From NCBI GenBank assembly GCA_965644265.1, contig OZ286473.1:64666001-64730000 (forward strand): a DNA stretch of 64,000 bases, given 5' to 3'. The position numbers and the translations under genes are program-made. The first letter of the stretch is position 1. Each line of letters opens with the position of its first letter. Shown in pieces: positions 3,743 to 64,000 of this stretch. A model generated the notes under the pieces. The model was not told the origin of the DNA and did not search any database. It worked only from the letters and a program-made list of their open reading frames with translations. Source of the DNA: Glycera tridactyla. Its lineage: Eukaryota.

Positions 3743-4582
3743 TTGTTACAGGAATGCAATGCGGCTGTGCAGAAAATGGCTGAGGACCATCTAAATGCTC
3801 ACGGGCCAGACAAACTGATGAAAGCGAAACACGTTCTCATGAAGTATGGTCATCCTAAAATCCTCTTCATTGGATCTTCGCATGTGGTTCATATGACTAA
3901 AGCCATACGCCATCTACCGGCTACCTGTGAACTTAAGCCTTTCCTAATGGACACAGTTGAGCTAGGAGTTGGAGGGGCCAAAACATGGAATCTCCTGGAT
4001 AATCTCAAAGGCTTAGGTATGAGTGAAGAAAAAACCCTGAAGTATGGGAACCAATGGGACCCAATCGTGAATTCAGTTTGGAAACCTAATTTCATTGTCC
4101 TCATCATAGGTGGAAATGATAGTGACAACTTTGAAAAATACACATCAACAGCATATGAAGGTCTTGAGCCAATTACGGCGACAAAACAGGCACATGAGGA
4201 CAAAATTCTATGGGATGACGAACTTTTCCCCAGAATATTCAACTTGATAGATGATATCTGTGAGGCGTTCCCAGGTGTTCCTGTGGGACATATCCCTGTT
4301 TTCCCACGTATCTGGTGGGAAGATAATGGTCGAGCGATGGCAGATTGTATGAATTATAAATTCTACGGAATTTTCAAGGTTACCCATCCTGTCCGTTAGC
4401 TGCCAACTAGAACACTGTACTACTACAAAGACAGACCACGTGTGAGCACAGGATATAGGGACGATATCCTACCGGGCTTTCTTGAAAAAGATAATACTCA
4501 CTTGAATAATCTGGGCTACCAGGCAATGATCCGAGATATTCTCCCGAAAATAATGGAACACTGGAGATCACTGAACGAGTGA
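3743..4582 (+). pseudogene. SGNH/GDSL-family esterase ORF interrupted by one in-frame TAG (4397-4399)
   Basis: Block I ILFIGSSH, block II GVGGA, block III IIGGND. After the TAG the same frame continues LPTRTLYYYKDRP...LEKDNTHLNNLGYQAMIRDILPKIMEHWRSLNE* (block V DxxH = DNTH), stop at 4580-4582. Confidence 0.8.
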
Positions 4583-5234
4583 TTAGAATGCCGAGATTGA
4601 TATACCTCTGATTTTGATCACATCGCTATCACAATAATAACGCTCCGTCACGAACCTATATTACTCCCAAAAAGATGTGAAAACTCAACATTGGAAAGGC
4701 AGCATTGGGTTGCCTGACTCCAAAAACCATAATACATCCAACTATATACATGCCACATTAAATAAAGCTATCTTGAACCTGGAGATACAATTGATGATCT
4801 AGTTGAAATAAAATGAAACCATATAAAACACCAACTTTGGTTTGTCTATTTCTCTATAACATATATGAGTGGGCGACATGACCGATTTTGACAAAAGGTG
4901 ACTGGTTGGTTTTCATCATTGTTCCTTTGTACAACAATTGAATGCATGTGTGGATCTATTTTTGAATTTTTTGAATGTGTACATACCCAGATTATAGCAT
5001 GAGGTACCGACGACTGAAGACATCTAGACGAAGTCTACTGCTCTTTCACTCCATCATACTTCTAGCTAGGCCGGATATAGTTACCCGCTTTATAGGAAAT
5101 GTAGTATTATATTATCATAAACTATAATACCCTTAGAGTCTATATGTAACTTTGCTCTCCCATACCACATTATACAGAGCTGTATATTTGTGATCTCTGT
5201 GTGACTGAAATCTCCCACGCACAACATAAGACAA

Positions 5235-10499: not shown

Positions 10500-12380
10500 C
10501 TGCTGTGCAATGCCCATCTTGAACCCTTCCATCGATGGCGACCTTCTCACTTGAAGATCCAGGCAGTTGTACTCCACGATTGTAGGTGTGAAGAATTATT
10601 GTCGATACTACTCACTTGTACATCATATTTGGACAAGCTGTCTTGTGACTTCTAGTCGGGTGTTGCTCTCCGCATCTTGTGGATGGCACGATGGCAGTAT
10701 ACAGACTAGGTTGTTGAGCAGATTGTACATGGTTGCCAGATGTGAACTGTTATGTCTCTCCTCCCAATGAGGGCCAGCCAAGTTCGCTCATCATGGTAGA
10801 TATGCTGCCCTGCTTCTCACTGGTACATCTATGGGGCTTGTCACATACCAGCATCCTTGCTGCCGATCACTGTACCTTTTTGAGTATGGGGATGTTTCCC
10901 TTTCTATGAGGGTCCCAGACTGCACAGGCATACTCAAAGGTTGGCCTCACTAAGGTGGTGTAAGCCCTGGCCTCGATCTCTTCGCGACATTTTCACAGCT
11001 TGCCTCTGCATGAGAAATCCCAACATCCAATGTTTACATGCAACCACAGATTCAATGTGTTGGTTACATTCCATGTCTGAGCTCAGCAGACCACCCAGGT
11101 AAAGGCTCTGATCAACACATGTGAGTTTGCAACCATACATGTGATATTTATGGCTTGTTGGTGAACGTCTTGTTGATGTGACGTGCATCATATAGCACTT
11201 CTTTACATTGAATCTCATCAGCCATTTTGAAGCCCAAGATGTTATTTAGTCAAGGTCATATTGGAGTTTGATCCGGTCCTCCCCAGGCTCTATCACATGG
11301 TAAATGAGACAATCATCAGCAAACAGCCGTAGTTTAGATTTGATCCCATCAACAGATGTCATTTATGAAGACCAAGAACAAAATTTGGTCAAGAACAGAC
11401 CCCTGGGGCACTCCCGACGCGACATCAGCAAAATCAGACGCCTGTCCATCCAGCACGATTTGGCCTTCTAGCCACTTCTTGATCCATTTCCTCACATCCT
11501 CTCGGATTCCATGATACTTGAGCTTGATCATCAATTTGGAGTTGGTTGGTTGGTTCTGGTATAACGTCACATCAGCACCATCTGGGTATATTGTGACGCC
11601 CATGCAATGGGCGTGGTGGGATCTTCCAAGACTCCTCCTGGGTCCCAAACGGAAGGTGGAACTTTACGAAATTCACACACATCAGTGTGGCACAACATCG
11701 AGCTTTTGAAATGTCCAGAATGGACATGTCCACCTGCTTTCTTTTGTCGATGGCTGAGAGTAGCTGCGTTTTGAATAAGAGCTTTGATCTGTAGCCATGT
11801 TGCAGGTCTGTAAGGATATTACTCGATTCTAGATATTCAATGCTGTTTCTTGCAAGAATATGTTTCAGAATCTTTCCCAATATAGCTGCAAATGAAACTG
11901 GCCTATAGTTTACTGCCTGACTGCGTTCCCAATTCTTGTATATTGAGGTTACATTTGCTGTTCTCCAGTCCTCTGGAACGATGCGCTGTTAGTGTATGTT
12001 GATACAAATGTGTTAGGACAGGTGCTAGATATGCTACACGTGTCTTCAGCAGCCGAGCAGCTGCTTTGGATGGCTCGAGGTTTTTCTAAGAGTTTCGGAA
12101 CACCTCTATTCCTGATGATGATGTCTTGCATGGAGAGACCTCTTGGGGCATCCATTTCTGCCAGTCTGCTCGTGTCTTCTTTTGTGAAATTGGTCTGAAT
12201 TGTTCAATCAGAATCGTAGCCTTCTCCTTGGTCGTCGATCCAATGGTACCATTTGATATCAGAATCCCAACACCAAAGTTGTCATTATTTGGAGACTTGA
12301 CAAAGCAATAAAACTTCTTCCCATTGTCATGATTTTCAGGGTCGATCAGAGATGCTGCCCTGGTGATGGCTGGATACATT
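10500..12380 (-). pseudogene. Decayed, 5'-truncated CR1-type LINE ORF2 (RT and C-terminal region)
   Basis: Minus-strand fragments KKFYCFVKS, ILTDLQHGYRS, LDISKA, VASGVPQGSVLDQILFLVFIND, RLFADDCLIY, MRFNVKKC, RPTFEYACAVWDPH, ELGWPSL; many frameshifts and stops. Confidence 0.85.
11540..11690 (-). mobile_element. Family A SINE fragment inserted into the CR1 RT
   Basis: Family A core with (GTTG)n tail splits the RT between the AFDVVPH-like segment and SKLMIKLKYHG. Confidence 0.7.
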
Positions 12381-13044
12381 AGTCAATGCATTGAAACATA
12401 TACATGCCAAGTTAGGCGCCAAGTTGCTGAGCAAAGGCACCTCGACATGTGGACTCAATGGGCAACCGCAAGGTTAAAATGTCATCTACAGTGTCACCCT
12501 GCAAATATGGGATTGATTTACATGATAGAATTTCTGTAGTTCAATTATTTTTGGCTGATGTGTTGATCAGTGACCAAGGGATCAGTTCACTTGGCCAGAA
12601 TTCCTGTAAAATCCATTGCTCACAACTCCTAATCACAGTTTGTTGCTTGGTTTGTTTCTTTGGTTTTGATGTCCTTTCAAGCATACTGAGCTATATCAGA
12701 CTAAAAATAATAAAGAATGAATCACTGCAATCCTCTACTCTGTAAAGCACAGAAGTGGTTCTTCGGAGTGCATAGGAGAACAAGGCTCCCATACACACAG
12801 CCAGCCTTTGATACCCCAGTCGACATGCACTGGATTTAGGGATCACAGACCAACATCTCTTTATGAATCCATCCCAACAGATATGATACTAAGACATCCA
12901 GTGGATAAGTCTCAATTTATTTGTTCAAATATTTACATCAAGTTTGACATATTTACAAATAATTGTACAGCGCCCTCATATACACAATATTGGTTTTAAT
13001 TCAATCTGGTTCCCAGTGGCGAGAATTGAAGACAAGAGTTATTA

Positions 13045-16574: not shown

Positions 16575-17030
16575 CATTGACCTTGACCTAATTTTTGAGA
16601 CATAGTTCCGTGAGGTCATGACCTAGTTTCCAAAGATAGTTTCCACAGATCGGGGGATGGTTCCTATAGTTCTAAGATGGCTGACGAATTTCATTGATTG
16701 GAATTTGGAATATTTCAATGTGGAAAACGTCATGACTGCATTGGATTTATTGTCATTAGGCAATATTTAGTGCCACATTCATATTTTGTTACTTTACTTT
16801 CACTGATTTTGTGCATCATTTGACAGTGCAATCAGCCTGCCCCCAGTGGTGGCGCTTAGAACCAGTGATCATATTTCGACACAAGCGTTCGAGGCAAAAT
16901 TTACCATCTCATTAATACGCATGCTCATAGCACAGCTAATGTCTTCACCACAGGTCGACTTTAGATAGTAGCTCGAACCCGGCCCAGGTCACAACTTCAA
17001 GAAGCTAGGTCACAAAAATTAGGTCAATGT
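16575..17030. mobile_element. MITE-like element with imperfect terminal inverted repeats
   Basis: TTGACCTAATTTTTGAGACATAG near 16580 mirrors CTAGGTCACAAAAATTAGGTCAA near 17005-17030. Confidence 0.5.
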
Positions 17031-17209
17031 CACCCCTTCCGACCTGGAATAAAACATGCAATACTACAACTGCCTACAAAGACCACCATTGGTTGAATCA
17101 GGAGGTGGTCTTTCTAGATATGTGGCCTTTGTAGTACTCACTGTCTATTGTCCAATGAAAATCATGACCACAATAATTTCCCAAGCAGTTTTTCACTCAG
17201 AGAAGGCTT

Positions 17210-17813
17210 TCAATAGTCCAGCTCTGGAAATGAATGATGGGTTGTGAAGGGTGAGAATGGAATCTGTGGTGAGAACGTTGTGGAAGGGTATTCTAGGTGT
17301 AGTGGTCGCAATGGGTGCTGATACGAGGGGCGCGGGAACTCATGCGGATTGTACATCGGCGCTGGCGCTTGGAACTCGGGTTGTACATTCGGGGTTTGAT
17401 AACTGGAGGTTCGCGGCGGCACCTGACTTCCAGCGACCTGTGCTTGAAGATTTGTAAAACCCGTCGTCGACGTCACCTCCAATGGTGTGTCTTCGCTGGC
17501 TGCTTTTGGCTGTGACGTTGGTTGCTGATGCGGTTGGTGTGGTGAATGGATCTGCTGAGACGGTTGGTGCTGTTGTTGGTGCTGTTGTTGTTGCTGTTGT
17601 GGCAGGTCTTTTGGTGGTGTGGCTGCGGGTGCTGTCACATGTGTCAGCGCAGGTATTGGTGCTGATGGGGTTGTTGCGGTAGGAGAATGTAACTCTTCCA
17701 TAGGAGGTGACCTCTGGTGTGGAGGAGGCAGTGGTATGTCGTAACTCACAACTTTCCGTGGCCGACCTCTTTTCCGTTTGCCTGGTATGCCATCAATGTT
17801 ACTGGATGCAGAC
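17210..17813 (-). CDS. Last coding exon: AT-hook and Q/P/H-rich region
   Basis: Acceptor ATTTTAG, phase 2; SASSNIDGIPGKRKRGRPRKVVSYDIPLPPP...QQQQQQHQQQHQ...FPELDY*; stop at 17210-17212. Confidence 0.8.
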
Positions 17814-20800
17814 CTAAAATTTCAATAAATAACCTACATTTCAGCAATGCGACTCACAAAAAACAAGTACACGAGGACTGTGATGATACCACCCTAGAGG
17901 TATATTCAACTATGTTAAAAAAGGACCTTGCTCGTCTCAAGTGCTCACCCATCAGAGGAGAGACCAGTCACCACCCTAGATGTGACCAAAAAGAGATGTT
18001 CTATCATCAGAGGTACCGTATAATTGACATAGTCAAATAGGGATGCAGCCACCATGAGAGTAGTCTCCCATCAGAGTTGTTTCTCATCAAGGGTCCGTCA
18101 GTGCAGGTTTCACTATGTCATTCTAGCAGGGAGAACACCAAAGATGCATTAGCCTGTAGCTGAAGAAAGGAAGCTTCTACAATAAACTTTTAACACTGTG
18201 AGTATCGTGAACCTTACCTACTCAATGAGAATATACATATTAACCCACATCGGAGCTAATTTTCAAACAAATTGTAATTTCGGCAAAATTTGATGACTTC
18301 CTTTTGGCCCATTGGGGGTATTGGATTTTCACTTCCGGATAGGGCCTAGTGTCAGTTACGGATGGCTAATAATTACTAACACATGATATGCCAATCACTT
18401 GTGAAAGGTATTACAAATCCACAGCTGAGATAGAGGGCATGTAGCTTTGTAGAAATTATCAATAACCAGTCACACAGAAACTCTCAGGTGAAATTCATCA
18501 ACTTGTCAAGGCTGATGGTCAACTTCCAAGGGATCAACCAAATCTAGTACTTTCAAAAACTTTCGCAGGACTTTATAGCGATTTTGAAATGTGATGGAAT
18601 TCTCAAGAGGTCGGTCCGAATTCAAATTGAATCATACCTAATCATAGCTCTTGAGAATACTAGCGATACCCTACAACTATTCCAAGACACATTCAATGCA
18701 TGGGGTCTCCCATTTGATTTGATCATTGTTGTAAGAGGGGGAAGAGAAATGTAATTGTACAAACCCTGTTTTCAAATCAATGGGAGGATCTGCCTGGCTG
18801 ATTTGTGACCTATAATTCAAGAATGTATGAACTCTTTATTGTATACAGTATTACAATATTTCTGACTACATACAAAAACTTCAGAGTAGTTCACTGTCAA
18901 CTGACATCATTTCATGGATTTAACAACAGTCAGACTTCATGTTCACAGTAATGCCAGTCCCATATGCTTCCTTTAGGATGATGATCATTGTTTTCAACAG
19001 ATTTCAAAAGATCGGTGAAACGAATAAGTAAAAATAGACATTCTTGGTGATGCAAAATGCACAGGAATGAGACCGACAATTTTCCCAACAACCTAGAATT
19101 GCCTAGGGAAGGTGCAGTTTGTTGTAGAATACATGTATACCTAGTGTATATCTAGTGATGAGTAATAAGGAAGGAATAAAGCTCATCCTCCCTGTTGGAG
19201 TATGGAAAGGGTAAAGCTCTCACCCTGTGCTATTTCCTTATCCTCTATTCGCTACATGGCGTCCACTGGGAAACTCAGCATCAGAAGTCTCATGCTCATC
19301 ACTTGCACAGTTCAAATCAATTCGAAGTTTGATATGGTAAAAACTGAGGCTCTGAATGCAGACGGTCTCTCAACAGAGGCATACTTGACTATGTCAAATG
19401 GGAAAGTTGCCCGGATAAAGCTCTTTCTCATCGTAGGTGGTCTCTCATCAGGGAGTCCCTCATACTGTACATACTGCCTGGTTCAAATTGAAAACTCAAA
19501 TCCAAAGCAGACTGTGTGACCAATAGAGTGAAGATGAGAACAGATGTCATAATTACATTACAGAGCTATATTCTGCCTAACATAGGAATGTTAATGTTAA
19601 CAAAACTTACATTTTCTCTTTTTGCTGGGCTTCCATCTTGGCTCTCATTTCCGATGACATAAGATTGTGGGCCTGAAAAATACAAAGTATTCGGGTCTAA
19701 CATATTTCCTTTGTTCTGAAGGGCCACTTAGAGGTCGGGTGGTCACATTGCTGGACACAGGAATCCCACACTCCCTGGATGCAGCTCCATTCATGTCCTA
19801 TTTCCATGCATTTTCAAACTCATCTCCTAACTTAGATTTCCATGCAAACCCCAACAAATGCTACTTAACAGTAGCTACGATTGAAGACAAGGCAGATGGC
19901 AAACATACTGAATNNNNNNNNNNNNNNNNNNNNNNNNNNNNNNNNNNNNNNNNNNNNNNNNNNNNNNNNNNNNNNNNNNNNNNNNNNNNNNNNNNNNNNN
20001 NNNNNNNNNNNNNNNNNNNNNNNNNNNNNNNNNNNNNNNNNNNNNNNNNNNNNNNNNNNNNNNNNNNNNNNNNNNNNNNAAGAATGAAAAGTTACTCACA
20101 CAAGTGTGATGTTCTGTTGCAGCGTACCAATAGACACTTGTCTTTTAACTAGGTGTCACAAACAAGATTAATAGTGCATACCTGTGTACAACATCTCCAC
20201 CCATCCTGCTTCAATCTTCATGATCTAGTGCCAAAATAATCAGGACAGGGCTTCTTCTATCCTGTATAGAGGTGCGGCATTTGCCATCAAAAACGTGGAA
20301 ATCCGTGGAACAATCTGTTAAACTCACTTTTCGTACACAGAATAGGCAGTGACCATGCTCCCTGTATTACTCCATTGTAGCTCCACTCCAGAGACCTCTA
20401 GTGGTGTGTCCCGATTCCTGTATGTAGCTCCCTCTAGTGGGAGTTGTTGGTATTATCCATTTTTTTATCAACACAATCATATCTCTGCTTGACTGACCTG
20501 TATGCCATGAAGCAGAGAGCGTGCAGGAGCGGACGTCTGTGGTTGATTTGTGACGGTACCAGTCTTGGGATCAGAAGATGCCTTATGCACCACATAGATG
20601 CAGTCAGATCGAGGCTGAGGCGCACCTACGGGGCTGGTCATATTCACCGGATCTTTCGTTGGTGAACTTTCCTGGAAAAAGATATTGAAGAGTGAGTTTG
20701 CTTCCAGATTCCTGCTCAACCACTTACCTCTGGTGAGTCCAAAACAGGCTAGGCTAACCAATTACCCATTCAGGGAATCTATAATGTCACAAAACATCAG

Positions 20801-23800
20801 CAGGGCTCTACATCAGGGCTCTACATTGGCCAGAGTATTCAGGAGCCCGCTGGCTATTAAGTTGAAATTTTTGGTAGCCACTGCAAAATGTTGGTAGCTA
20901 GTTAATACATCACCAATTACAACCTCTCAAAATTTTCGGGGCAGCTGGCTCCTAACTTTTGAAATATGGTAGCCAGGGGGTAAATTTGTAAGCCATTTGC
21001 TACCCACAGGTAGCAACATAGAGCCCTGTACATAGCACCTTGAGTTTTCACAACCTCTGCTATTGGCCACCATGGAAGGGGCTGAAGCCTTTTTCACTTG
21101 GCTAGGATGTCATCTTCTAGAATAAGTCATGCAAACACGGGAAATCAGTGCTTCATGGGATTTGGAGGCTGAAAAATACACCTATGACATGTCAAGAACT
21201 CAATATACCAGTTTGGAAGGGAAAATATGGTGAAATTGGTATACATGTGTTCTCTTGAGCAGGTTTGTCTGTAATGTTCCAGTGCTAATACAAACTGTCT
21301 AAGTTTACAACGTTCTGAAGCCGACATACTTTTGAGCTCCTATTGGTTGATTGTACATCCTCTTCCTGATCACCCTCCGAGGGTGCGATACTCGATGCGC
21401 TCGGACTAACCAGGCCACTCGAACTTATCAAACCACTAGAATGTGCGGCTGAAACACATAATTCATACTGGTTAAGAATATTTGTAAAATTTACTCACTC
21501 AACAATGGCAAACTCTAATGTTCGCTATCAAACATGAATGTAAAAGTTTGGATTATAGCTTGAGCAATGCCATAATCTTCCAGACTGCAACTGTCATTTC
21601 TTGTTATGAATTCAACTTTTATCGTGTGCAGGGTACCGACTAGTGCTCCGACGATTCCCCGATTATATTGATTATTGCATCATTGAGAGGTCCGATTCGA
21701 TTAATCGATCATGAAAATTGGTGATCGATCAAAATAGTCATGACTTTTTCGTACTTCTATGGAATAACTTTAGATGATCTCATTAATCAGCATCGTGGGA
21801 ACATGCAAATGTTAGGCAGAAATCTCACCAAGCTCACAAATTACAAGAAAAACGAATATAGAAGTGTATTGGTCAGTAGAGGCACAGGATGCAAGTTAGT
21901 ACCCATATCTAAGGGTAAAAACCTTCTTAACAAATCATCAAACTTATGATTTCATAGCAAATCTTGAGCATTGTGAGGACAGCCAAGTGAGTCTTAACTC
22001 TGATTATTTAATCGATAATCAATCGCTGGCAAGTCCGATTAATCGATCATCATTTTTGCAACCGAATACGAGCACTAGTACCAACCTCCTAGCCTTTGTA
22101 AGGGCAGGTAGACAGACATATAAGTGCCGAGCTAGCCATAATGCTACAAAATAGCAGCTGCAGTAGTTTGTGTGGATCAGGGCATAAGAATACTGGCCAC
22201 TACACAGACTGAGCAGTCAGTGTCATGCAGAAGATCCAGGTTCAAATCCACATCAAGAAATTAGATGGTTTCAACGAGTGTAATCTGTATCATGAAATAT
22301 AGTTTCATTCTAATCGATTCCCATTGCATGGAAATTTCACATATGATTCACTGAGATAGAGCAGAGGAATGGCAAGTTCTGATGGACAATAGTAGTGGTG
22401 CCAATTTCAAAGAATAGCAGTGCTAGTATTTGCAGTGAAATAATGATGAAAATGTTGATTTTGAATAATGGCAACACTCACAAAAAAATCAGAGCTTCAG
22501 ATTTTCTGACAGGTTAGGGGGCCCATATGGCCCATGAATCAGAAATACAATGGGCCATAATGCAAGATGGTGGGCCATCTCATATTTTTCAATAGTAAAT
22601 AGGGGGAAAAAAGCTGGGCTACTGGGCCTATGAAAGGCAAAGTCAATGGGTCAAATTGGCCAAAATTGGGGCCGAGGGCCGAGGGCCAAGGGGGCAGAGG
22701 GCCCAGGCCCACCAACAATCTGAAGCTCTGCAAATTATACAAATTTTGGCCTGAGAAGAGTGGTCCAATACAATGTATCATTATCATTCGCATCTCAGTG
22801 TAGAGTTCATAAAATGAGACAATTTCCGGCGTAAACTTACGTGGGATAATTTGAGGAGCCAGAGACTGCTCCTTATTCATCACTTTACTGATGTTGACAT
22901 TCATCGGGATGTTTTCATCAACGGTGATTTTCAGCATTCCCTCGACGGTGAATCGGCGCTTGTAGAAGAGATGACTATCACAGAGGTACATGATGGAGTT
23001 CTGCAGAAGTTCGCCGATGTTGTGCTTCACACGATTCGTATCGATGCGCGACATGCCTGAACTGTTCAAACATAGAAAATAACTCGAAGTCACTTCCATT
23101 CACCTACTGCTGCAATAATTATGATCCCATTTCATTTGAAAGAGAGATGGCAAAAGCTACCAAAAATATCAAACTAGAGGCCAGTTGCTCCCAAATACGT
23201 TGGCCAAAGTAGAGCACTGTAGCCCCATTTCTTCATTTTCTTTCTTTTACTGCACGATCAACTATTAGCAATTCTTCACTACTGTCTTCCACAACCCTTG
23301 ATTTCTGAGATCTCCTTCATTCTGACAAGCCCCCCACACTGAATTTTTATTTGTTTGGCCTTTATTGCCAGCCATTTAGTCAGGGGCTATTCATCCATCA
23401 GGCTCGATAGAACTTGGCAAAATTAGATAAAAGAAATCAGACCAAAAGAAAAGATGAAGCAATATTTTCTCATGTGACTCATACAGTCATGAAACATAGC
23501 CTTCACTGAAGGCGGACCTCGCCTTGGCGAAGCCACACAACACGCCGCATCAAGAAAGGCATTTATATCTAAAGTTTACACAAACAAAACAGTGCTGCTT
23601 CTTTGATGGGTGCATACAGTTCCTGATTGCATAGGAAGACCCAATACATAATTATGCATGGAAAGGTACCTTTCCTCAAAAAATCTTTAAAAAAAAGTAA
23701 ATTTCTCTAAAATAATAGTACAGGGCCCTACACTAGTGGTTGCCCTACTGGCACAGGCAGGTGCTTTTATCAATCTGCCTGCCCGATGGACAAGTACCCA

Positions 23801-25992
23801 ACCCTTATTTGGGCTATGATTATATGCTGGAGGGCAGGTGAAAATGACAGGGAAGGCAGGTAAGAATCCTACTTCATCTGCCCGAATGACAGCTGAAGAA
23901 AAAAGTTAACGGAAAGCCCTGCAGTAGGGCTAATGGGCAATCCCATACATGGGTGAGAATCAATGAGGGATGCTTTGGCTGAGAACAGTGTTCATAATCA
24001 TAAAAATCCATTTCTGAAAAACCAATTTCCCCCCGAAATCTATCAGGCATGTTGGGAGACCCCATTCATGGCTGGCATTCATTCAGGAATGCTATGAATT
24101 GCATCCACGCCAAGTTTGGTGTGGCTATGAACAGCCACCATCTTCAAAAAGATCGATTTCTGAAAAACCAATTTTCACCCCAAAACCAACCAGGCCCTCT
24201 GGGAGACCCCATCCATGGCTGGCATTCATTTCTTTAGAAAAATCCATTTCTGAAATACCAATTTTCACCCCAAAACCAACCAGGCCTTTTGGGAGACCTC
24301 ATCTATGGCTGGCATTCATTAGGGAACGCTATGAATTGCATCAACGCCAAGTTTGGAGTGGCTATAAACAGCCACCATCTTTAGAGAAATCCATTTCTGA
24401 AAAAATACAATTTTCACCCCCAAAACCAACCAGGCCTGTTGGAAGACCCCATCTATGGCTGGCATTCATTAGGGAATGCTATGAATTGCATCCATGCCAA
24501 GTTCGGAGTGGTTATGAACAGCCATCATCTTTAGAAAAATCCATTTCTGAAAAACCAATTTTCACCCCAAAACCAATCAGGCCTTTCTGGAGACCCCATC
24601 TATGGCTGGCATTCATTAGGGAATGCTATGAATTGCATCCATGCCAAGTTTGGAGTGGCTATGAACAGCCACCATCTTTAGAAAAATCCATTTCTGAAAA
24701 AACAATTTTCACCCCAAAACCAACCAGGCCTATTGGGAGACCCCATCTATGGCTGGCATTCATTAGGGAATGCTATGAATTGCATCCATGCCAAGTTTGG
24801 AGTGGCTGTGAACAGCCACCATCTTTAGAAAAATCCATTTCTGAAATACCAATTTTCACCCCAAAACCAACCAGGCCTTTTGGGAGACCCCATCTATGGC
24901 TGGATTCATTAGGGAATGCTATGAATTGCATCCAAGCCAAGTTTGGTGTGGCTATGAACAGCCACCATCTTTAGAAAAATCCATTTCTGAAAAAACAATT
25001 TTCACCCCAAAACCAATCAGGCCTTTTGGGAGACCCAACTATGGCTGGCATTCATTAGGGAATGCTATGGATCGCATCCAAGCCAAGTTTGGAGTGCCTA
25101 CAGACAGCCACCATCTTTAGAAAAATCCATTTCTGGAAAATCAATTTTCACCACAAAACCAACCAGGCCTATTGGGAGACCCCATCTATGGCTGGCATTC
25201 ATCAGGAGATGCAATAAAAGGCATCCTTGTTGAGTTTGGTGTGTCCCGGTACTCAAAAATCACTGAAATTTTCAGAGTCCAGTCATTCAAAAAAAGTGAG
25301 GTTTTATCCCAAATCCATGATACATCACTCGACTGGCATGCATACGGCTGTGGTGATGGTTGGATGGCCCCCGAATACACTGGAGCATGTGTACATCAAA
25401 TCTGGTGGAGGTAGGGGCCATGGTTGAAGAGTGACCTGACCTGAACAAAAACTAAGACATAAAGTCCAATTTCCCACAAATGAGCAATTTCACCCCAAAA
25501 TCACTACCCTGAACTGAGATACTGCTGCTGTGAAGGGTAAACATCCCCTGTAACACAATGGAGCATGCGTGCATGAAAACTGGTGATGGTAGGGGCCATG
25601 GTTGTGGGGTCACCTGACTCCAACAAAAACTTTGACGTGAAGTCCATATCCTCAAAAATATGCATTTTCACCCAAAAATATGATACAAAACTGGGATAAT
25701 GCTGAATGGATGGATGGACACCTTTCCCAATACTCAGGAGTATGTGTGTATGAAATCTGGTGGTGGTAGGGGCCATAGTTGCTGAGCTACAGACTTCAAT
25801 GAAAAACTTTGACGTAAAACTTTGACGTAAAACTTTGACATAGTGCTCTCTTAATATTATTCCTGATGTGTTATAGCCCATGTGCACAAGATCTGATGAT
25901 GGTAGGAGGGTTAAAGAAAAACTTTGACATGAAACTTGCAGAAAAAAAAAACTTTGACGTAAAACTTTGACGCAAAACATTGTAAGAGTGCG

Positions 25993-26023
<31 letters not shown>

Positions 26024-29000
26024 ACGCCGACGCCGACGCCGACGCTGATGCGAGGACAATACCTCTCTTCAACTTCGTTGAGGCGAGGTAAAAATCTATG
26101 TATCATTATGTTTGTGGGTTGGGAAAAAAATGTCATGTCTGGAACTACACTCGTTCTAAATGAAAGTGATGGTAAAACCAAAGTCATCTCAAAATGCTTT
26201 TGGATAAAGCCTGGGCAATTCAGCTAAAATAAGAATAATGGCTTTAACCAAATTTGCTACAGGAAATATCATTCTAGTGCTTATGCAAGGAAGCTTGCCT
26301 ATTCATATCTTTTGGCAAGAAAATGGAAGACAACGAACAATTCATTCCAGTTTGGGAATGTTTATCTGTACTTCATTAGTACCATCTGGTTAGAATAATT
26401 TCTTGAGCATCACTACATTCAAACAATCTGAAATTTCCCGCTTTCCCGTTAATCTCCCTGCCTGCTCGCTCCAGTTCCTACCCAATCCCATGCGCTGAAA
26501 AAATTATGCAAATTATGTACCCCTCATTCTCCTGCCAAAAATCATTGTCCAAATTCTTTAATGGTTTCATATATCTTACCTGACTGGTGAGAGTAATTTT
26601 GGACCATCCTTCTTTGGCTCTTGTTGTTTAGCTTCTTGTTGCCTCTTTAATTCTGCTATCGTCTGCATAGTTCCCTTGTAATCTGTTAAACTGTAACCAG
26701 ATTGTACAAAGTGTTAGCTCAGGCAGTAATGCCGATGGGATAGAGGAACATTTTGAGAACATGTATCTTGGCTGCCCCTGTTTCAGTGAATATGGACAGG
26801 TGGAGGGGGAAGTACATGTAGCTATAGACGAGTCAGATAGGAAAATGGAAATATTGAGGTTTTCGGTCCACTTTCTGCACTTAAGTAGGCTAAATCAGAC
26901 CACCTGCCAAGGAGGAGCGAAGATGAAGGGTGAAACATTCCTGCATGGTAGGACCGGGGATTGAACCCCAGACCCATTGCACGCCAGCCCAGCACGTTAC
27001 CACTGAGCCAGCAAGGCAGGCTCCCGACTCAGACAGACTTCATCATAAGCTTTCACGTCACAAAGAGTTAAACCCTCTAAAGGATGACCATCTATTTTGA
27101 ATTATTTCCACCCAGCATTTAAGGCAATTTGACAGGAGGTATTACTATACAAGACATTCATATAAGGGTGCAATGTATGAAATAGATAGGGATATGCCAA
27201 ACAACAACTCACATGAACATCACTGGGACCTTTGAGAGAGCACTTTGATAACACACAGGTTTGAATGGAGCAATCGGCTTCTGAAATAGGCAATTACTTT
27301 TCAGAGGATTGTACTCACTCCAGTTTGATTTGTTTGGTGGGGATGTGTTCCGTATCTATGCTGGCTTTGATGGCAATAGCTTCCGAGGCAGTCAAACCAA
27401 CTGACCGCATCTGATAACAGAAAAGAATCATGAGATATTTTCCAAGTAACAGTGTTTAAAATATCCTGTGAAACTCAAAGGAACAAGGCATGCGCACCCA
27501 CATTCACATGATCCCATGTACTCTTCTACATGTTTGCTACTGCGCCCCCCTTTTTACATACATAGATGCCAACCTTTGAAGGACAGAAATCGTAGCCGTG
27601 CCAATTCTAGGGAGTAGCAGTGCCAGTACCTGTAATGGAATGATAAGAAAATCTTGATCTTCGAGAGTAGCATCGCCCGTAAAATGCAAGAATTTTAACC
27701 TCAAAGGAGTAGCTGCTACTCAAAAATTGTAGCGGTTGGCATCTCTTTGCAAATTTATACTTGTCTTCCTCACAACAATACCATGGCACTCTTCACATCA
27801 CATCACATCTGCGAGGTGGTTTAAACAGACACAGGTGACCGAGGCATAGTCTGAACTTCATGCAGTCTTCACGAAAAACTTTTCCAACCACACTCCCATC
27901 GGGAGAGCGGACTGGAAAAATCACTATCCCGAATTCGTTCAAGTGCACGGATAACAAGCTCAAAATCTTGAGAGCAAAACATTTGTGTGAGTAAACTCCT
28001 TATCATGACGTGAGTTCCGACTTATCCGTCATGTGAGTGACTATCCAAGTAACACCAACCCATTTTTGGCTCAGGTTCATTCTTCAGAATCATACATCTT
28101 CAGGTATGTACATCATCATCTTGCATGGTATAGGGTTTTTTGTTGCAGGAGTCAAAACCATGTCGTTCTGTCTTCACAAAAAATCAAAACTTTCTGACCA
28201 ACTAAAAAAATTACTCTCTCCTGTCGGGAGAGTGAGTTTGGTATATTCAATCTTCCCCGGATTCGAGAGAGTGGATGAATTTGAAGACTGTTCATGCATA
28301 CTCACCCCTGCATGGATTCTACACGGATTAGAGCAGCTGGGTCCACAAGCCATTGCTAACCTTTTGTAACGTGATGGCTTACCCTGAAAAGAAGACGAGC
28401 ATCCAGTGAGGCAGTGTCCCACGCTGACTACGCAGGCTCTACTAACCCCCCCCCCCCCCCTTTCTTTTACATATTACTGTATATCATATTATTCTGAGAT
28501 CTTTCCTTGCTTCTCACCTTTGTCCTGCCCCCTCCCTCTCATAATTCCATCTGTTGTCTTCCATTCTGAATATTGTTCAGAAATATCTTGACAGATCTGA
28601 AGCCAGTGCTGATGTAATAGAATAACATATTATGGTCAGAAACCAATTGACCAATCAGAGGCCAGCATATGGCCAAAAATCGCTGAAGCATGACAGTACG
28701 GACCTGGTGAGTTCACCGTCCAGATATGAACGCCCTGCAGTCAGCGGTTGGAGAGATAATGGCCGAAAGCAAAACAACCAATCAGATGCCAGCATTTGGC
28801 AGAAAATCGCTGAAACCTATTGACCAATCAGAGGTCAGCATTTGGCAGAAAATCGCGGAAACCTATTGACCAATCAGAGGTCAGCATTTGGCAGAAAATC
28901 ACTGAAGCATGACAGTACGCAAATCAGGTCTGAGGGCATTTCAATAGTCCCTCGCCATTGAGATCGTGTGGGGCAAACATTGTACAAATAGAGATGCTGT

Positions 29001-32000
29001 AGGGATCAAATTCATGACACCATTTCAGGTTTGTGGCTAGCCCTGTAAGTTCACAATTTTTATCGATGACAATCAATGAGGGCTATTCTATTTAAAAGTA
29101 GGGGGAGGGGCGGAGTGGAAGCTAGATTGGAATTTAGGGGTAGGGGGGGTCCGGAAAAATGGAATTCAGGGAGATGGGGGGTCCGAAAAATGGGAATTTG
29201 GGGGGTGGGGGGCTGATGCTAACCCCCCGTACTCCAAATTGAGGGGGAGGGGCGAATTCTGAATTCAGGGAGCCGAATTCTCAATGTAAGGGGGGGGGGG
29301 GGGGGGTTATGCTCCTAATGCTCCAGAATTAATTGGATAAACTCCAAGCATGCTCCTGGACAGATGATAGTGGCCACCTGCTGAGACAACTCTCCCCTCT
29401 TCATCTTAGTTACCATGGCAACCCAATGAAGTTCTCACCCACTGGTATGTCAACATATTGAGTGGCTGGGCACTCCCCATATACAGTCAAACCTCTCTAT
29501 AAAGACCGCCTTTGGTTGCATCAGTAAGTGGCCTTTATAGGGAGGTGGTCTTTATAGAGAGGTCATTTACTGTTGAAAATACTACCACGGTCGCAGCTCA
29601 GGGTGGTCTTTATAGGGAGGTGGTCTTTATAGAGAGGTGGTCTTTAGAAGAGGTTCGACTGTAGTTGGACTTGCTCGAGGTCACCTCTATACAAAGACCA
29701 CCTGGCCACAAAGGCCATCCTCAGCTGTGACCACAAAAGTGTTTGTACATTGAATCAGCGATGTTTCTGGCCCAAAAATCGAGCGGGCCAATGGCCCGCT
29801 CAGTAGAAAAACAGTGGGCCATTTTCAGGATTGAATGGGCCATTTTCAAAATTTGGTGAGCCATTTCCAGGTTTGTAAAAACAACAGTTTTTTCACAATA
29901 AGACACACCCACCACCACCCACACCTACCAACCACCACCCCCAAATGGACCAGCCACCACCCGCCACCAAGCACCGACACCACCAGCCACACACCATCCT
30001 CCCGGCATCACCACCACCACCAACAACAACAACCTGACTATTTCTTTTGTGAAATCCTCAGTGATACATTGAGTTGTAAGCAGGAATTGAATGGGCTGAT
30101 TTTAGTTGGCTCACTACTTTTCTTGACACATATTGAGGGTTAATGCGAAATCTCATTTTGTAGGCTCACACACATGGACACACACACACACACACACATA
30201 CAAGGAATGGCATCAAAATTATCCACCTGCCTGGTTAGCAGTTACATTTTCAGATCTACCTGCCCCTTCAAAATTCAGGATGGCTCCATTATGTATTCAT
30301 CAAATTTATTATCATTTTCTACCTGTTCATTGAGCAGGTAGGTTTCAAAATCATTCTGTCAACCTTGGAAATCTACCTGCAAGGGGCAGTTGGGGGCCAT
30401 CTAGAAGCACACACATGGAACTGTCTGTTGATGTGGTGGTAACATCCCAGTCATCAGCCAGTGGGAGGTCATTAAGAGGTATTACTTTCCCTGTAGAATG
30501 CCCCTGCCAACATCAGTTGTCCCTGAGCATAGTCACTGTTTGTTTATTGATGAAATTAATGGCGCGCCCAGGGAGGCCCATGGAGCTATTTGTTAGTGCG
30601 CCCACATCAACATGTAAGGCGCCGATGGCGCGATGGCGCTGGAAATAAACTTCGCTGTTGAATGACCTCTCTACTGAGACCAATTTTTTTATCCAACTGA
30701 GGCTGGTCCAACTATATGAATGGGGGGGAGGGTTCAATATTTCTTACACTCCCCCCACCCTACTTTTGAATGGAATAGCCCTGAAGTGTGATCTAGGGTT
30801 TCTGTGCAAAATGCAGCAACAAATTCCATGTATTTCCCAGGGTTTTCAAGAGCTGAAATGACCGATTTTCCAGGACAAAGATTCTGACCTCAAGGGCAAC
30901 TGAGTCAGATTTTCAGTTTCAGCAGCACAATTTCTGAAGAAAGGACATCATGTACACAGAACAAAATTGATTATATCTGAAATCCATTGATATTCCAGTG
31001 CAATAACAAACTTTCAGGCATTTTCCGGGGATGAGAATCAAATTCAACAGACTTTCCATGGCCAAAAGTGTAGTTTCAAAATTCAAGGGCTTTTCCAGAT
31101 TTCAATGACTCATGAAAACCCTGAATATACCACATAGGGATCCTGAGCTAACAAATGGTTCATCAAAGGCCGGCCATGTGTGTTAAGAGTCCATGCTGCA
31201 TGCATATGATTAGAATGGTAGCCACATGTATCATCAGTGACAGTTTTTTTTTTCAAGGAAAAACTTGGGAGGGAATTGACTCATTTCTTCACTCTCACTA
31301 GTAAATCCAGTCTAGGGATGATAAACCTTACTCTGTCAATCATTCAATCCAATATTGGGGTATCTAGAATAACCCTCATACAGTGGAATCATCATACACA
31401 GAGAAATCTGTGATAAATTCCATGATAAGTAAATCAAGATTAAGTGTACCTATGTACAATTCTCCATCTGTGATGAACTGATAGTTGGTATACTTACAAG
31501 AAGTTCTGGTCCTGTTTCTTTCTCAGAAGCTAATGTAGACGTACATGGCTTTGGTTTTAGTATTTTCTTCTCCTCCTCTTTGTCTTTATAGGCCTGTAAA
31601 ATCAGTGACAAAAGACTCGATACATCTTTCATTTAGGTAGAGCTTGTCCAAGGTCTGCCTGGAGTGTTATTCATCATTCCATCCTGGACATGTCTCAGAG
31701 TGTCCATACAGTGGAATTCCCTGACTTTCCCCTGATGAAGTATATAATTTCCCTGACAAGTCAATGTTGGCAAATAGCTTCAACCAACCCATATAGCCAT
31801 ACTATCCAGCAATTTTATTGAGCATGGACAGAGTAAAAACTAAACAGCAACACACAAGAACATGATGTCATTATGAAGAAGTCTGTGATACAAAAAAAAA
31901 TGAGAAACTGCAGTTTACAACAAAGAGGTATATAGTCAAACCTGCTTGAGAGACCACCTCTATACAAAGACCATCTGCCTTTGAGCTGTGACCAGGAAAG

Positions 32001-33537
32001 TTGTTTCTTAAGTGAAGGATCTCTACAAACATCACTTCTTGATGTGTCCATTGGTGGTCTTTGTGGACAGGTTCAACTGTACTGCTGTACATGATGTTGA
32101 TTTCATACATACAGTCGAATCTCTCTATAAATACCGCTCTTGGTTGCATAAAAAATGGCCTTTATAGGAAAGCGGTCTTTAAGAGAGGCCATTTACTGTT
32201 GAAAATTATGCTACCATGGTCAGAGCTCAGGGTGGTCTTTAAAGAGAGTTGGTCTTTAAAGACAGGTGCTCTCCAGAGGAGGTTCGACTGTACATAGTCA
32301 AACCTGCTTGAGATACCACCTCTGTACAAAGACCACCTGCCTCAAAGGACAACATGAGCTGTGACCAGGAAAGTTGTTTCTAGAGTAAGGGATCTCTCTA
32401 CTAAGACCACTTCTTCAGGTGCCCATCGGTGGTCTTTGTAGACAGGTTCGACTGTACTGCTGTACATGATGTTAATTTCATACATATATGGTAGCTCCGG
32501 AACAGACTAAACTGGCTAAATTTGCAATGCACTGCTGTCAACAGTCTGAACTGTGTGATAAACCCACCTTCATGGCCTGTCTTCTTGTGGCAAACTGTGT
32601 CTCAGAATTTTTGTATCCCAGGAACAGGGTCGGGATTGGATTGTCGGCGCTTGGCTTTTTGTCCTTGAAATGGTGTGTGCATATCTGGAATAAAATGAAT
32701 AGAAAACACACTATTATCAATAATTCAAATATGGGAGTGATATAGAATCATGTTTTTTGATGTAGGTAGAGGCTAGGAGCAGGATAGTATATGCTAGTGC
32801 CAGGTAGAGGTGTGTCTGAAGTGTGAGCCACTTTTCTCTTAACAACCATCTTAGTTCCCATCATCTTGTGTTCAGGGTTTGTGTGAGTCATGCATGCAGG
32901 GGCCAGAGCATCTAGCTCTCATAGATTTGTCACACACAGCATATGCACAACCCTTTGGATTGATATGAGTCATTGGCCTAAAACCATCTATTTTATATTA
33001 AAATCAATGGAATCACTTCAGGTAATTCAAGACATGTTTTTGCATTAATTGGTCACTGGCAGATTCAATTTTTGTGTGAACTGTTTGCTCAAAATCTAAT
33101 TTGGAAGACACTATCAATCTACGATCAACAGCCTTCAGCAGTCACAAGTTAAAGAGAGCTGACTGCATGCTGCAAAGTGTGAACTGTGAACACAACATGT
33201 GAACAGGTGCTGCCCCCACCGTGACCTACTTTTGGAAAGCAGCCCCTTGAAACTGTTGTGCTCACTCGCTGCGGCTGTCAGCTCAGGTACTCACCACGCT
33301 TGAGTTGCCCGGTATGAAGTTGTCACGGTTCACTGCACGGATCCATTTGATTCGGATCTCGGGACTCTTGGGGAAGCGGAGCAGTTTGAAGGGGGCTGGG
33401 CAGCCACATTCTTCGTGCTTGAGTGGGTTGTGCAGTTGACAGGTGATCTGTCGCCAGGCGCTCAACTTGCGCTGGTTGTTGTTGCAACCGACAACACAAC
33501 AGCAGCGCCCACCGCTTGTCTGGTATGGCATCGTCAT
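17210..33537 (-). CDS. Multi-exon gene: THAP zinc finger + unnamed ~65-aa module + AT-hook + Q/P-rich tail (model 1917 nt, 638 aa, at least 11 exons)
   Basis: Exons (minus): 33537-33295, 32684-32568, 31593-31498, 28383-28306, 27410-27319, 26690-26580, 23061-22841, 21448-21330, 20671-20498, 19672-19611, 17813-17210. All introns GT-AG; phases 0,0,0,0,2,2,1,0,0,2 match at every junction; no internal stop. Confidence 0.7.
19611..19672 (-). CDS. Internal exon (phase 0 to 2)
   Basis: TTTGTATTTTTCAG|GCCCAC...GAAAAT|GTAAGT; AHNLMSSEMRAKMEAQQKEK(M). Confidence 0.75.
19914..20079. other. Assembly gap (166 N)
   Basis: Run of N. Confidence 1.
20498..20671 (-). CDS. Internal exon (phase 0 to 0)
   Basis: TCTTTTTCCAG|GAAAGT...ATACAG|GTCAGT; 58 codons ESSPTKDPVNMTSPVG...LLHGIQ. 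Confidence 0.75.
20814..21028. mobile_element. hAT-like MITE with 5-bp TSD
   Basis: TIR CAGGGCTCTA...TAGAGCCCTG flanked by TACAT on both sides; inverted partial copy at ~58346-58520. Confidence 0.7.
21330..21448 (-). CDS. Internal exon (phase 1 to 0)
   Basis: TGTGTTTCAG|CCGCAC...TCAAAA|GTATGT; (P)AHSSGLISSSGLVSPSASSIAPSEGDQEEDVQSTNRSSK. Confidence 0.75.
21641..22077. mobile_element. hAT-type MITE with 8-bp TSD
   Basis: TIR TAGTGCTC...GAGCACTA; flanks GTACCGAC / GTACCAAC (7 of 8 match); ATCGAT-rich subterminal motifs. Confidence 0.75.
22510..22735. repeat. GGGCC-rich MITE-like fragment
   Basis: Dense GGGCC/GGCCC motifs resembling the subterminal region of the 29756 and 56166 elements. Confidence 0.4.
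22841..23061 (-). CDS. Internal exon encoding the unnamed conserved-looking module (phase 2 to 1)
   Basis: TTTGAACAG|TTCAGGCATG...CCCAC|GTAAGT; SGMSRIDTNRVKHNIGELLQNSIMYLCDSHLFYKRRFTVEGMLKITVDENIPMNVNISKVMNKEQSLAPQIIP. Confidence 0.8.
23721..23921. mobile_element. CAGGGC-terminated MITE nested in the Helentron
   Basis: CAGGGC...GCCCTG ends; flanks TAGTA/CAGTA; ACCTGCCC-rich body shared with ~34435-34630, ~35030-35242, ~53860-54012 and ~63380-63430. Confidence 0.55.
24003..25200. repeat. Tandem array, ~146-147-bp unit, ~8.5 copies
   Basis: Anchor C(C/G)ATTTCTG at 24008, 24154, 24244 (deleted unit), 24391, 24541, 24688, 24835, 24981, 25127. Confidence 0.95.
25260..25980. repeat. Second degenerate array (~178 bp x3) plus 13-bp AAAACTTTGACGT repeats
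   Basis: GGTAGGGGCCAT at 25410, 25588, 25765; 13-mers at ~25802-25840 and ~25917-25975. Confidence 0.8.
25993..26046. repeat. (GACGCC)n microsatellite
   Basis: About 9 hexamer units. Confidence 0.95.
26580..26690 (-). CDS. Internal exon (phase 2 to 2)
   Basis: GGTTACAG|TTTAAC...GTCAG|GTAAGA; LTDYKGTMQTIAELKRQQEAKQQEPKKDGPKLLSPV. Confidence 0.7.
26830..27025 (-). mobile_element. tRNA-derived SINE
   Basis: Minus-strand Pol III A box TGGCTCAGTGG (27010-27000) and B box GGTTCAATCC (26967-26958), followed by a non-tRNA body. Confidence 0.75.
27319..27410 (-). CDS. Internal exon (phase 0 to 2); read-through of the donor gives IKLE*
   Basis: TTCTTTTCTGTTATCAG|ATGCGG...CTGGA|GTGAGT; MRSVGLTASEAIAIKASIDTEHIPTKQIKL. 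Confidence 0.7.
28306..28383 (-). CDS. Internal exon (phase 0 to 0), symmetric so least constrained
   Basis: TCTTCTTTTCAG|GGTAAG...GCAGGG|GTGAGT; GKPSRYKRLAMACGPSCSNPCRIHAG; other frames hit stops. Confidence 0.55.
28630..28920. repeat. Short tandem/dispersed ~44-bp repeats containing CCAATCAGA
   Basis: GACCAATCAGAGG(T/C)CAGCATTTGGCAGAAAATC repeated about 4 times. Confidence 0.75.
29484..29661. mobile_element. Tc1/mariner-pogo-like MITE (CAGT termini, TA TSD), 178 bp
   Basis: TA|CAGTCAAACCTCTCTATAAAGACC...GGTCTTTAGAAGAGGTTCGACTG|TA; same family at 32112-32290 and 63459-63636 (inverted). Confidence 0.8.
29756..30657. mobile_element. hAT-like non-autonomous element with 6-bp TSD, copy 1
   Basis: CAGCGATGTTT...AAACTTCGCTG; TTGAAT on both sides; colinear with 56166-56954. 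Confidence 0.75.
31498..31593 (-). CDS. Internal exon (phase 0 to 0)
   Basis: CTGATTTTACAG|GCCTAT...CTTCTT|GTAAGT; AYKDKEEEKKILKPKPCTSTLASEKETGPELL. Confidence 0.75.
31932..32487. mobile_element. MITE cluster: two copies of one MITE plus flank (31932-32111, 32293-32487) around a 179-bp CAGT MITE (32112-32290)
   Basis: TAGTCAAACCTGCTTGAGA...GGTTC(A/G)ACTGTACTGCTGTACATGATGTT(G/A)ATTTCATACATA occurs twice. Confidence 0.75.
32568..32684 (-). CDS. Exon 2: C-terminal half of the THAP domain
   Basis: TTTATTCCAG|ATATGC...ATGAAG|GTGGGT; ICTHHFKDKKPSADNPIPTLFLGY supplies the CxxHF and (AV)PTIF-like motifs. Confidence 0.85.
33295..33537 (-). CDS. First coding exon: N-terminal THAP (C2CH) domain
   Basis: MTMPYQTSGGRCCCVVGCNNN...PFKLLRFPKSPEIRIKWIRAVNRDNFIPGNSSV|GTGAGT; contains CxxxxC, FP and W signature residues. 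Confidence 0.85.
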
Positions 33538-46358: not shown

Positions 46359-46515
46359 NNNNNNNNNNNNNNNNNNNNNNNNNNNNNNNNNNNNNNNNNN
46401 NNNNNNNNNNNNNNNNNNNNNNNNNNNNNNNNNNNNNNNNNNNNNNNNNNNNNNNNNNNNNNNNNNNNNNNNNNNNNNNNNNNNNNNNNNNNNNNNNNNN
46501 NNNNNNNNNNNNNNN
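46359..46515. other. Assembly gap (157 N)
   Basis: Run of N. Confidence 1.
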
Positions 46516-63636: not shown

Positions 63637-64000
63637 TATAGCCAAACGTAAAGACCAACCGGGTTCACATAAAAAGTGGTCTTTGTAGACAGGTGACCTT
63701 CGTAGAGAGGTCGTTTATGGTAGACAACACTGTCAAAGTCAATGCTGAAGGTGGCCATTGTATGCAGGTGGTCTTTGTTTTGAGGTGGTCTCTTGACCAG
63801 GTTCGACTACATAACCAGGGCAGTTTGGTTCTCCTGGTGGGTGGGTCAACTCTCTTAATGTATTCTCACTCTGTTTTGTTCATCATGTTCATTTTAGACT
63901 GGTACAGGTGTGTTTGAACTATGAGTAACTTACACTTGACAACCTGTCGTGTTCCCCATCTTCGTGTTGAGCAACACACAGCATGCTTGATCTCTCAGTT

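Follow-up and report, generated by a model that had tools for sequence, protein, structure and literature searches.

A candidate THAP-family regulator of Glycera tridactyla combines a variant zinc finger, an AT-hook and a member of an apparently undescribed lophotrochozoan domain family

Here we describe a minus-strand gene in a 64,000-nucleotide (nt) stretch of the genome of Glycera tridactyla (GenBank assembly GCA_965644265.1, contig OZ286473.1, positions 64,666,001 to 64,730,000), referred to below as the window and numbered from its first letter. The gene has eleven exons (E1 to E11), and the explanation that we favour, with moderate confidence, is that it encodes a single nuclear DNA-binding regulator of 638 residues that arose as a lineage-specific fusion. 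The predicted protein would join an N-terminal finger of the THAP type, a DNA-binding domain shared with P-element-type transposases, to a module encoded by E7 and to an AT-hook near the start of the last exon. As judged from the conceptual translation, it would represent a THAP-family regulator of unprecedented architecture.

Rebuilding the gene from the sequence returned eleven exons on the minus strand, running from 33537 to 17210 and totalling 1917 nt, or 638 codons followed by TGA. Every intron is of the GT-AG type and the exon phases agree throughout, which confirms the exon structure and reproduces exactly the protein length of the original prediction, a model-generated annotation made from the sequence without database searches (Table 1). 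Its remark that lists of open reading frames (ORFs) show only fragments is likewise borne out, as the minus strand of the locus carries no long ORF. A run of 166 N, representing an assembly gap, begins 584 nt past the E9 donor and ends 241 nt short of the E10 acceptor. It is spanned by none of the exons or frames of the model, and the exons that flank it end and begin, respectively, in phase 0. The sequence of E9 is single-copy in the genome. A candidate polyadenylation signal, AATAAA, was also noted at 16746-16751 on the minus strand, approximately 460 nt past the stop codon.

Table 1. Exons of the window gene and the assembly gap that interrupts its ninth intron
Feature	Position	Strand	Description
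E1	33537-33295	-	Start ATG and first half of THAP (~33504-33295); donor gtgagt, phase 0
E2	32684-32568	-	39 residues; second half of THAP (32684-32622), C-x2-H-F and NPIPTLF box
E3 (candidate)	31593-31498	-	32 codons, Lys/Glu-rich linker; phase 0 to 0, open, donor gtaagt
E4 (candidate)	28383-28306	-	26 codons, phase 0 to 0, open, ends in GGG
E5	27410-27319	-	92 nt, phase-0 start with an ATG codon; in spliced contigs
E6	26690-26580	-	111 nt, charged helix-like linker; both junctions in spliced contigs
E7	23061-22841	-	221 nt; unnamed module at ~23039-22875; ATG at 23054
E8	21448-21330	-	119 nt, Ser-rich, disordered; canonical splice sites and phase
E9	20671-20498	-	58 codons, Pro/Ser/Thr-rich; canonical splice sites, phase 0 to 0
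Assembly gap	19914-20079		166 N, within intron 9
E10 (candidate)	19672-19611	-	62 nt; splice sites tttttcag / gtaagt; open in the required frame
E11	17813-17210	-	AT-hook 17779-17750, Pro/Gln-rich tail, TGA 17212-17210

Evidence for a continuous gene comes from public sequencing data. Six runs from two studies contain 25-59% of the words sampled from positions 16700-17830 (E11 and its 3' flank), and contigs from two runs of each study were mapped on the stretch 22300-28299, with E4 beginning 7 nt outside it. The junction of E5 with E6 (27319/26690) is crossed by contigs of runs X1, X2 and X6, and that of E6 with E7 (26580/23061) by contigs of runs X2, X5 and X6. The segments skipped by these contigs end in CT..AC on the plus strand, equivalent to GT..AG on the minus strand, and since the introns have been removed exactly, the contigs derive from processed transcripts. 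Both junctions had been named beforehand as the test of the model, and spliced contigs drawn from two studies cross each of them, which supports a real and expressed gene. The outcome that would have contradicted it, a THAP gene ending at 27315 (TGA 27317-27315) followed by a second gene starting from the ATG at 23054, did not occur, and a split into two genes between 27315 and 23054 is refuted by these junctions.

A single X2 contig of 698 nt provides further resolution of the middle of the gene, spanning the 221 nt of E7, the 111 nt of E6 and a 93-nt block at E5, which corresponds to the 92 nt of that exon and one additional base. On the 5' side of E5 it carries 9-10 more bases without a match to the intron, indicating that E5 is internal and spliced to some upstream exon. 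On its 3' side the contig extends 264 nt beyond E7, past the mapped stretch, a length that fits E8 (119 nt) together with 145 nt of E9, and we infer that the extension represents these two exons. The 210 nt made up of E5, E6 and the 7 nt preceding the ATG at 23054 contain zero stops in the frame of the module, compared with 5 stops and 1 stop in the other two frames of E5 and E6; the chance that a given frame is open over 210 nt was 0.015 in shuffled sequences and 0.022 in intron windows of the same length. E5 and E6 are thus very probably coding, with translation beginning upstream of 23054 and not at that ATG. Phase 0 is shared by the end of E2 and the start of E5, so that the THAP exons would remain in frame with E5 both with and without E3 and E4.

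The THAP finger was examined through searches run exon by exon, including Pfam on each exon. E1 exceeds the Pfam THAP (PF05485) cut-off of 23.9 bits with a score of 26.2 (E 1.4e-5), the match covering positions 1-44 of the 87 in the profile, and aligns with the human THAP2 and THAP11 chains, the THAP2 alignment covering FP..W..V.R.NF.PG. E2 alone, a piece of 39 residues and too short to score, gave no Pfam THAP match; it reads ICTHHF...NPIPTLF, and the presence of a THAP finger, as originally predicted, follows from the match above cut-off in the first exon together with the C-x2-H and PIPTLF motifs in the second. The C2CH ligands are found as C14-x3-C18 (or C13-x4-C18) in E1 and C83-x2-H86 in E2 and are invariant in paralogues, the conserved RFP, KW, HHF and NPIPTLF residues are all present, and the domain is N-terminal, with its first ligand 12-14 residues past the first ATG of the open frame. 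The spacing from C18 to C83 is 64 residues, outside the canonical 35-53, because an insert of approximately 22 residues separates the GC.N turn from the FP motif. Within this insert, at 33439-33400 (E1 residues 33-46), C33, H36, C44 and C46 form a C-x2-H-x7-C-x-C pattern, whose Cys and His residues are invariant across five genes of the genome, namely the window gene and four paralogues (L015-L018). Judged by these conserved residues, the domain is a variant THAP rather than a non-THAP domain, and its insert may constitute a second metal site, perhaps for zinc.

The four paralogous loci possess the same two THAP exons, at 41-47% and 50-58% identity, and share nothing else with the window gene; consistent with this, tblastn of all eleven exons against them returned matches by E1 and E2 only. 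At three of these loci the E2 homologues adjoin the E1 homologues (E 4e-7 to 1e-3). The recurrence of a two-exon THAP at four other loci defines a small subfamily of host genes. A further THAP-like open frame of 189 residues, 35% identical to E1, was seen on the opposite strand at contig positions 64659855-64660046 (+), approximately 6 kilobases before the start of the window.

At the other end of the protein, the sequence KRKRGRPRKV begins ten residues into E11 and presents an R-G-R-P core with basic flanks, so that the AT-hook (KRKRGRPRK) of the original prediction is present as a canonical motif. It is followed by a Pro/Gln-rich tail up to the stop at 17210, the frame being open over the 203 codons that separate this stop from a point just ahead of the acceptor. 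A word search with E11 found no relatives of 110-350 residues.

The most informative part of the gene proved to be E7. It has no Pfam match, and among the other exons and eight open segments of introns Pfam yields only THAP and the AT-hook. A HMMER search of E7 against 1.84 billion representative proteins returned 8 weak matches, the strongest of them scoring 48 bits with 36% identity. A cadherin-like protein among the eight was rejected as a false positive, leaving seven true matches that share a helix ending in LCK followed by F-T-I-E-G-L-L-G-I-T-L-D and F-L-V-N-I-N-E. In five of the seven (P0001, P0004, P0006, P0007 and P0008, which are metagenome or transcriptome proteins) the module occurs as an N-terminal tandem pair, a parallel to the variable copy number reported for the FiNZ domain of fish (bioRxiv 10.1101/2022.11.29.518450). 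Within the G. tridactyla genome, E7 alone matched 26 places and a profile of the family at least 64, of which 63 are stop-free, and the copies cluster on three chromosomes. The module is further encoded by 110 host-associated metagenome contigs, and a word search identified it in 46 proteins of 244-777 residues, including HELRODRAFT_183479 of Helobdella robusta and a protein of Paralvinella palmiformis. In the ESM Atlas, the structures neighbouring the Helobdella module belong to annelid and mollusc clusters, several of which consist of C2H2 proteins; this range makes a lophotrochozoan source of the window probable.

The family travels with several types of DNA-binding domain. C2H2 fingers accompany the module in 4 of 10 long frames, one of which belongs to a G. 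tridactyla paralogue, as well as in two database proteins, while BEN (PF10523) and FLYWCH (PF04500) were each found with it once, also in database proteins. THAP and the module were never found together among the 8 HMMER matches, the 46 family proteins, 80 metagenome loci or the at least 64 genome copies, and tblastn of the eleven exons against the 80 metagenome loci gave matches to E7 alone, with no second locus of the same architecture. The statement in the original prediction that the combination of domains was unrecognised is therefore upheld across database, metagenome and genome searches.

A second distinguishing feature of the window gene is the position of the module. A Met approximately 12 residues before the helix is found in 79 of 80 metagenome relatives, in all 9 paralogues and in most of the database proteins, which places the module at the protein N-terminus in these relatives. 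In the majority of the paralogues, a polypyrimidine-CAG acceptor precedes the module ATG by 3-36 nt, indicative of an intron in the 5'-untranslated region (5'-UTR). The window gene shares this layout, with an acceptor at 23062 and, at 23054, an ATG homologous to the start Met of the family, aligned within 3 residues. Here, in contrast, the upstream exons seen in the contigs are open in frame, which gives the module an internal place in the favoured model of the gene, departing from the N-terminal position of the family. Among known members, the window gene appears to be the only one in which the module is internal and lies behind a THAP domain. E7 retains every invariant column of the family alignment (A2), including the conserved C, L, E-G, T-x-D and N, and scores 102 bits against the family profile, a value that is not independent as E7 is one of the ten rows of that profile. 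Its identity to the family is approximately 30%, compared with a mean column identity of approximately 45% in the alignment, making it far more diverged than the paralogues.

The module comprises approximately 55 residues, and its predicted fold has no convincing match in the PDB. AlphaFold2 models E7 as a helix (residues 8-30) followed by a beta hairpin (36-45 and 53-62), with a predicted local distance difference test (pLDDT) score of 77. For a tandem relative it returned two units at a pLDDT of approximately 90 and a predicted template modelling score of 0.49, with half of the chain disordered, a model which suggests that the two modules pack as one body. Foldseek of the E7 model against the PDB found nothing at E <= 0.001, a PDB-wide VIA-align comparison of the two-module model gave as its best hit Hsp33 at Z 5.4, under the stated noise level of 7-8, and a sequence profile of the module had no match in the PDB. 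Two other candidates were discarded: the winged-helix domain STN1_2, which appeared on three relatives under the cut-off (E 0.002-0.04) and found no support in the fold searches, and sub-threshold bacterial rows, the only ones returned for E7 by the Protein Atlas. Searches of full-text literature returned no account of a domain of this type. The label of an unnamed module holds insofar as there is no Pfam, PDB or fold match, but the module is not an orphan, being a member of a large and conserved domain family. On these comparisons, E7 represents an apparently undescribed domain that is widely expanded among lophotrochozoans, in both annelids and molluscs.

Comparison with characterised systems places the gene among several families. 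Human THAP1, THAP2 and THAP11/Ronin and the C. elegans proteins LIN-36 and HIM-17 share with it an N-terminal C2CH finger with RFP, W, C-x2-H-F and a PIPTLF box of the AVPTIF type, as well as a charged helix-like linker after the finger and the lack of a transposase core. It differs from these factors in its Cys-Cys spacing (64 versus 35-53 residues) and four-Cys/His insert, in that no HCF-1 binding motif was seen in it, and in possessing a module, an AT-hook and a Pro/Gln tail without counterpart in characterised THAP proteins. HMGA-type proteins have the same R-G-R-P core with Lys/Arg flanks, whereas the window gene carries one hook rather than three, set within a long Pro/Gln tail and combined with a zinc finger. 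The THAP domain is also common to the P-element and THAP9 transposases, from which the locus differs in having neither an RNase H-like catalytic domain nor a GTP-binding domain, and in being spliced and single-copy.

The closest functional parallels for the module are with domains that accompany DNA binders in other animals. BTB mediates self-association, pairing or cofactor recruitment in PATZ1 (which combines BTB, an AT-hook and C2H2 fingers), in NACC1 and in Drosophila mod(mdg4). As the module family is paired with the same list of DNA binders as BTB/POZ proteins (PATZ1, the ZBTB C2H2 proteins, the BTB-BEN protein NACC1 and the BTB-FLYWCH protein mod(mdg4)), a functional likeness may be proposed. 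The module has no similarity to BTB in sequence or fold, with no Pfam match and a best structural Z of 5.4 to an unrelated protein, and in the window gene it is internal; it does not belong to the BTB, ZAD or KRAB families, and the likeness would be one of function only. A further set of comparable domains, lineage-specific and N-terminal in zinc-finger proteins, comprises KRAB in tetrapods, ZAD in insects, SCAN in vertebrates and FiNZ in cyprinid fish. Like these domains, the module is short, encoded by one exon and N-terminal, occurs in dozens of genes of particular lineages, sometimes in tandem, and is joined to DNA binders; it differs from them in sequence and predicted fold, in its annelid and mollusc range and in having partners beyond C2H2, and any shared function is proposed by analogy. 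Lineage-specific N-terminal partners of zinc fingers have a documented precedent in FiNZ, KRAB and ZAD (bioRxiv 10.1101/2022.11.29.518450).

Based on these comparisons, we propose a division of labour along the protein in which the N-terminal THAP domain (E1-E2), with its C-H-C-C insert, would make sequence-specific contact with DNA and be followed by a charged linker (E3-E6). The E7 module would then serve in self-association, in pairing with some of its at least 64 paralogues or in the recruitment of cofactors, with association or recruitment the most likely role by analogy. Beyond a predicted disordered region (E8-E10), the AT-hook of E11 would contact the minor groove at AT-rich flanks and the Pro/Gln-rich tail could contribute to activation or condensation. 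The suggestion of a host nuclear regulator is partly supported, by the contigs, the THAP domain, the AT-hook and the lack of a transposase core, with each functional role assigned conditionally. Most probably, such a gene originated when the exons of an upstream THAP gene came to be spliced to the acceptor that closes the 5'-UTR intron in a member of the module family; with this acceptor 7 nt ahead of the former start codon, the ATG at 23054, read-through in frame would have internalised the module. The marked divergence of E7 from its paralogues fits a change of constraint or context following internalisation, and we infer this fusion history from the layout of the locus.

Several points weigh against a single fused gene. 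The records of the sequencing runs give no kind and their description as RNA is a guess, so that it is the spliced joints that indicate processed transcripts. For the original claim that THAP, module and AT-hook reside in one protein, contigs establish the splicing of E5-E6-E7, and the joins of E1 through E4 to E5 and of E9 through E10 to E11 are predicted from frame, phase and splice sites. E3, E4 and E10 are short and were picked in the original prediction so that the frame stays open, and an extra exon could hide inside the N gap of intron 9. The AT-hook scores 15.4 bits with Pfam AT_hook (PF02178), under the cut-off of 17.4 (E 0.017), although for a motif of 13 residues such near-cut-off scores are common. 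All other members of the module family start at a Met homologous to 23054, no orthologue with the THAP-module-AT-hook architecture was found in any search, and a dimerisation role for the module is drawn from analogy.

Of the alternatives, a locus with two products bears most directly on the 5' half of the gene. E5 opens with an ATG and E4 holds a Met, which makes possible a protein containing the module and AT-hook, translated from one of these codons in a transcript with another first exon and lacking THAP; E1 and E2 would then represent a separate small THAP gene, an isoform from an alternative promoter, or unexpressed sequence. The contigs show only that some exon precedes E5, and outside the window gene THAP was found next to the module neither in this genome nor in the 80 related loci. 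Against this, E1-E2 end in a strong phase-0 donor with no downstream exon of their own, and read-through past that donor meets a stop after 10 codons, whereas E2, E3, E4 and E5 are all of phase 0 and open. Just two GTRAGT donors, those of E3 and E4, occur in the 5157 nt between E2 and E5, and E4 is the sole pairing there of a strong acceptor with such a donor, a pairing found only twice on the minus strand of the entire window and not at all on its plus strand. Furthermore, the single extra base that the X2 contig matches next to E5 would suit an upstream exon whose final G follows a base other than A, favouring an exon ending in GG such as E4 (GGG) over the commoner AG, as in E2 (AAG). We consider two products unlikely. 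It is improbable, too, that the gene is an ordinary member of the module family, translated from the ATG at 23054 with E5 and E6 as 5'-UTR exons, despite the alignment of that Met with the family start and the similar acceptors of the paralogues: the stop-free 210 nt upstream, set against 5 stops and 1 stop in the other frames, would be a rare chance event, and the lower identity of E7 fits a changed context.

With respect to the 3' half, the E10 splice sites are near-consensus and its length (2 modulo 3) brings E9 into the 203-codon frame, the longest of E11, while E11 and its 3' flank occur in the same runs as the spliced E5-E7 contigs. These observations make it distinctly unlikely that this part is mis-joined, with the gene ending after E9, or continuing through an exon in the N gap or in another frame of E11, and the AT-hook falling outside the protein. 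Such an error would be accommodated by the location of the gap in intron 9, by the mere 62 nt of E10, by a second E11 frame open for 150 codons, and by the position of the E9/E10 and E10/E11 joins beyond the contig mapping. On domain content, introns, copy number and nearest THAP relatives, a decayed or domesticated P-element-type transposon is a very remote prospect. THAP is the DNA binder of P-type transposases, and the genome contains at least 150 matches to their RNase H domain (PF21787), many in uninterrupted frames of 600-940 residues and several in pairs or triplets with identical scores, suggesting that the population of P-like transposons is large and may have been active in recent times. 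No match to this domain occurs in the 64-kilobase window, however, in agreement with the original observation that no DDE catalytic domain is present, and the gene is single-copy with ten introns. Its nearest THAP relatives are the four paralogues, which likewise contain introns, divide the domain over two exons in the same manner and show 41-47% identity, compared with just 33% for the THAP on a 592-residue open frame that is possibly a transposase; the earlier suggestion that the gene is possibly transposon-derived receives no direct support.

The introns of the gene and the remainder of the window hold several repeats. Intron 6 contains a tandem array at 24231-25206, with 6.6 copies of a 147-base-pair unit at 92% matches, whose summed contig depth reaches approximately 9900 and is very high in all four runs, which indicates that this unit is either abundant or transcribed at other sites in the genome. 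In intron 5, a dispersed repeat at 26860-27040 shows numerous loose ends and, in all runs, a summed depth of 1500-6800; it resembles a short interspersed nuclear element, and ARAGORN found no tRNA in it. Another dispersed repeat, encoding GGLYREVVFIERWSL-like peptides in several frames, occurs at 29600-29760, 31870-32500 and 63642-63914 and also upstream of the module exon of one paralogue (L007), thus sitting both in introns of this gene and near a relative of its module. A reverse-transcriptase fragment (motif GVPQGSVLDQILFLVFINDI) lies at 10937-12400 on the minus strand, separate from a long interspersed nuclear element at 257-8171, and a second assembly gap, of 157 N, is located outside the gene at 46359-46515. 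No clear IRS exon was found among open segments of at least 75 residues, and no synteny search aimed at IRS was made.

Taken alone, the window gene would be one more lineage-specific THAP-type regulator, and its value lies in the family that its middle exon revealed. This large and well-conserved family appears to be unannotated and travels with four classes of DNA-binding domain in molluscs and annelids. The locus also revealed a THAP subfamily with a conserved additional Cys/His insert and, if the fusion reading is true, offers an example of a new architecture arising by splicing into a 5'-UTR intron acceptor. A broader proposal, which we regard as possible rather than probable, is that the module constitutes an undescribed lophotrochozoan domain present in at least 64 genes, with an N-terminal self-association or effector role like that of BTB, ZAD, KRAB, SCAN or FiNZ, and that the window gene records its shuffling through a 5'-UTR acceptor. 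Partner domains of the KRAB, ZAD and FiNZ type account for much of transcription-factor expansion and of transposon control in other animals, and a lophotrochozoan counterpart, if true, would open the same questions there.

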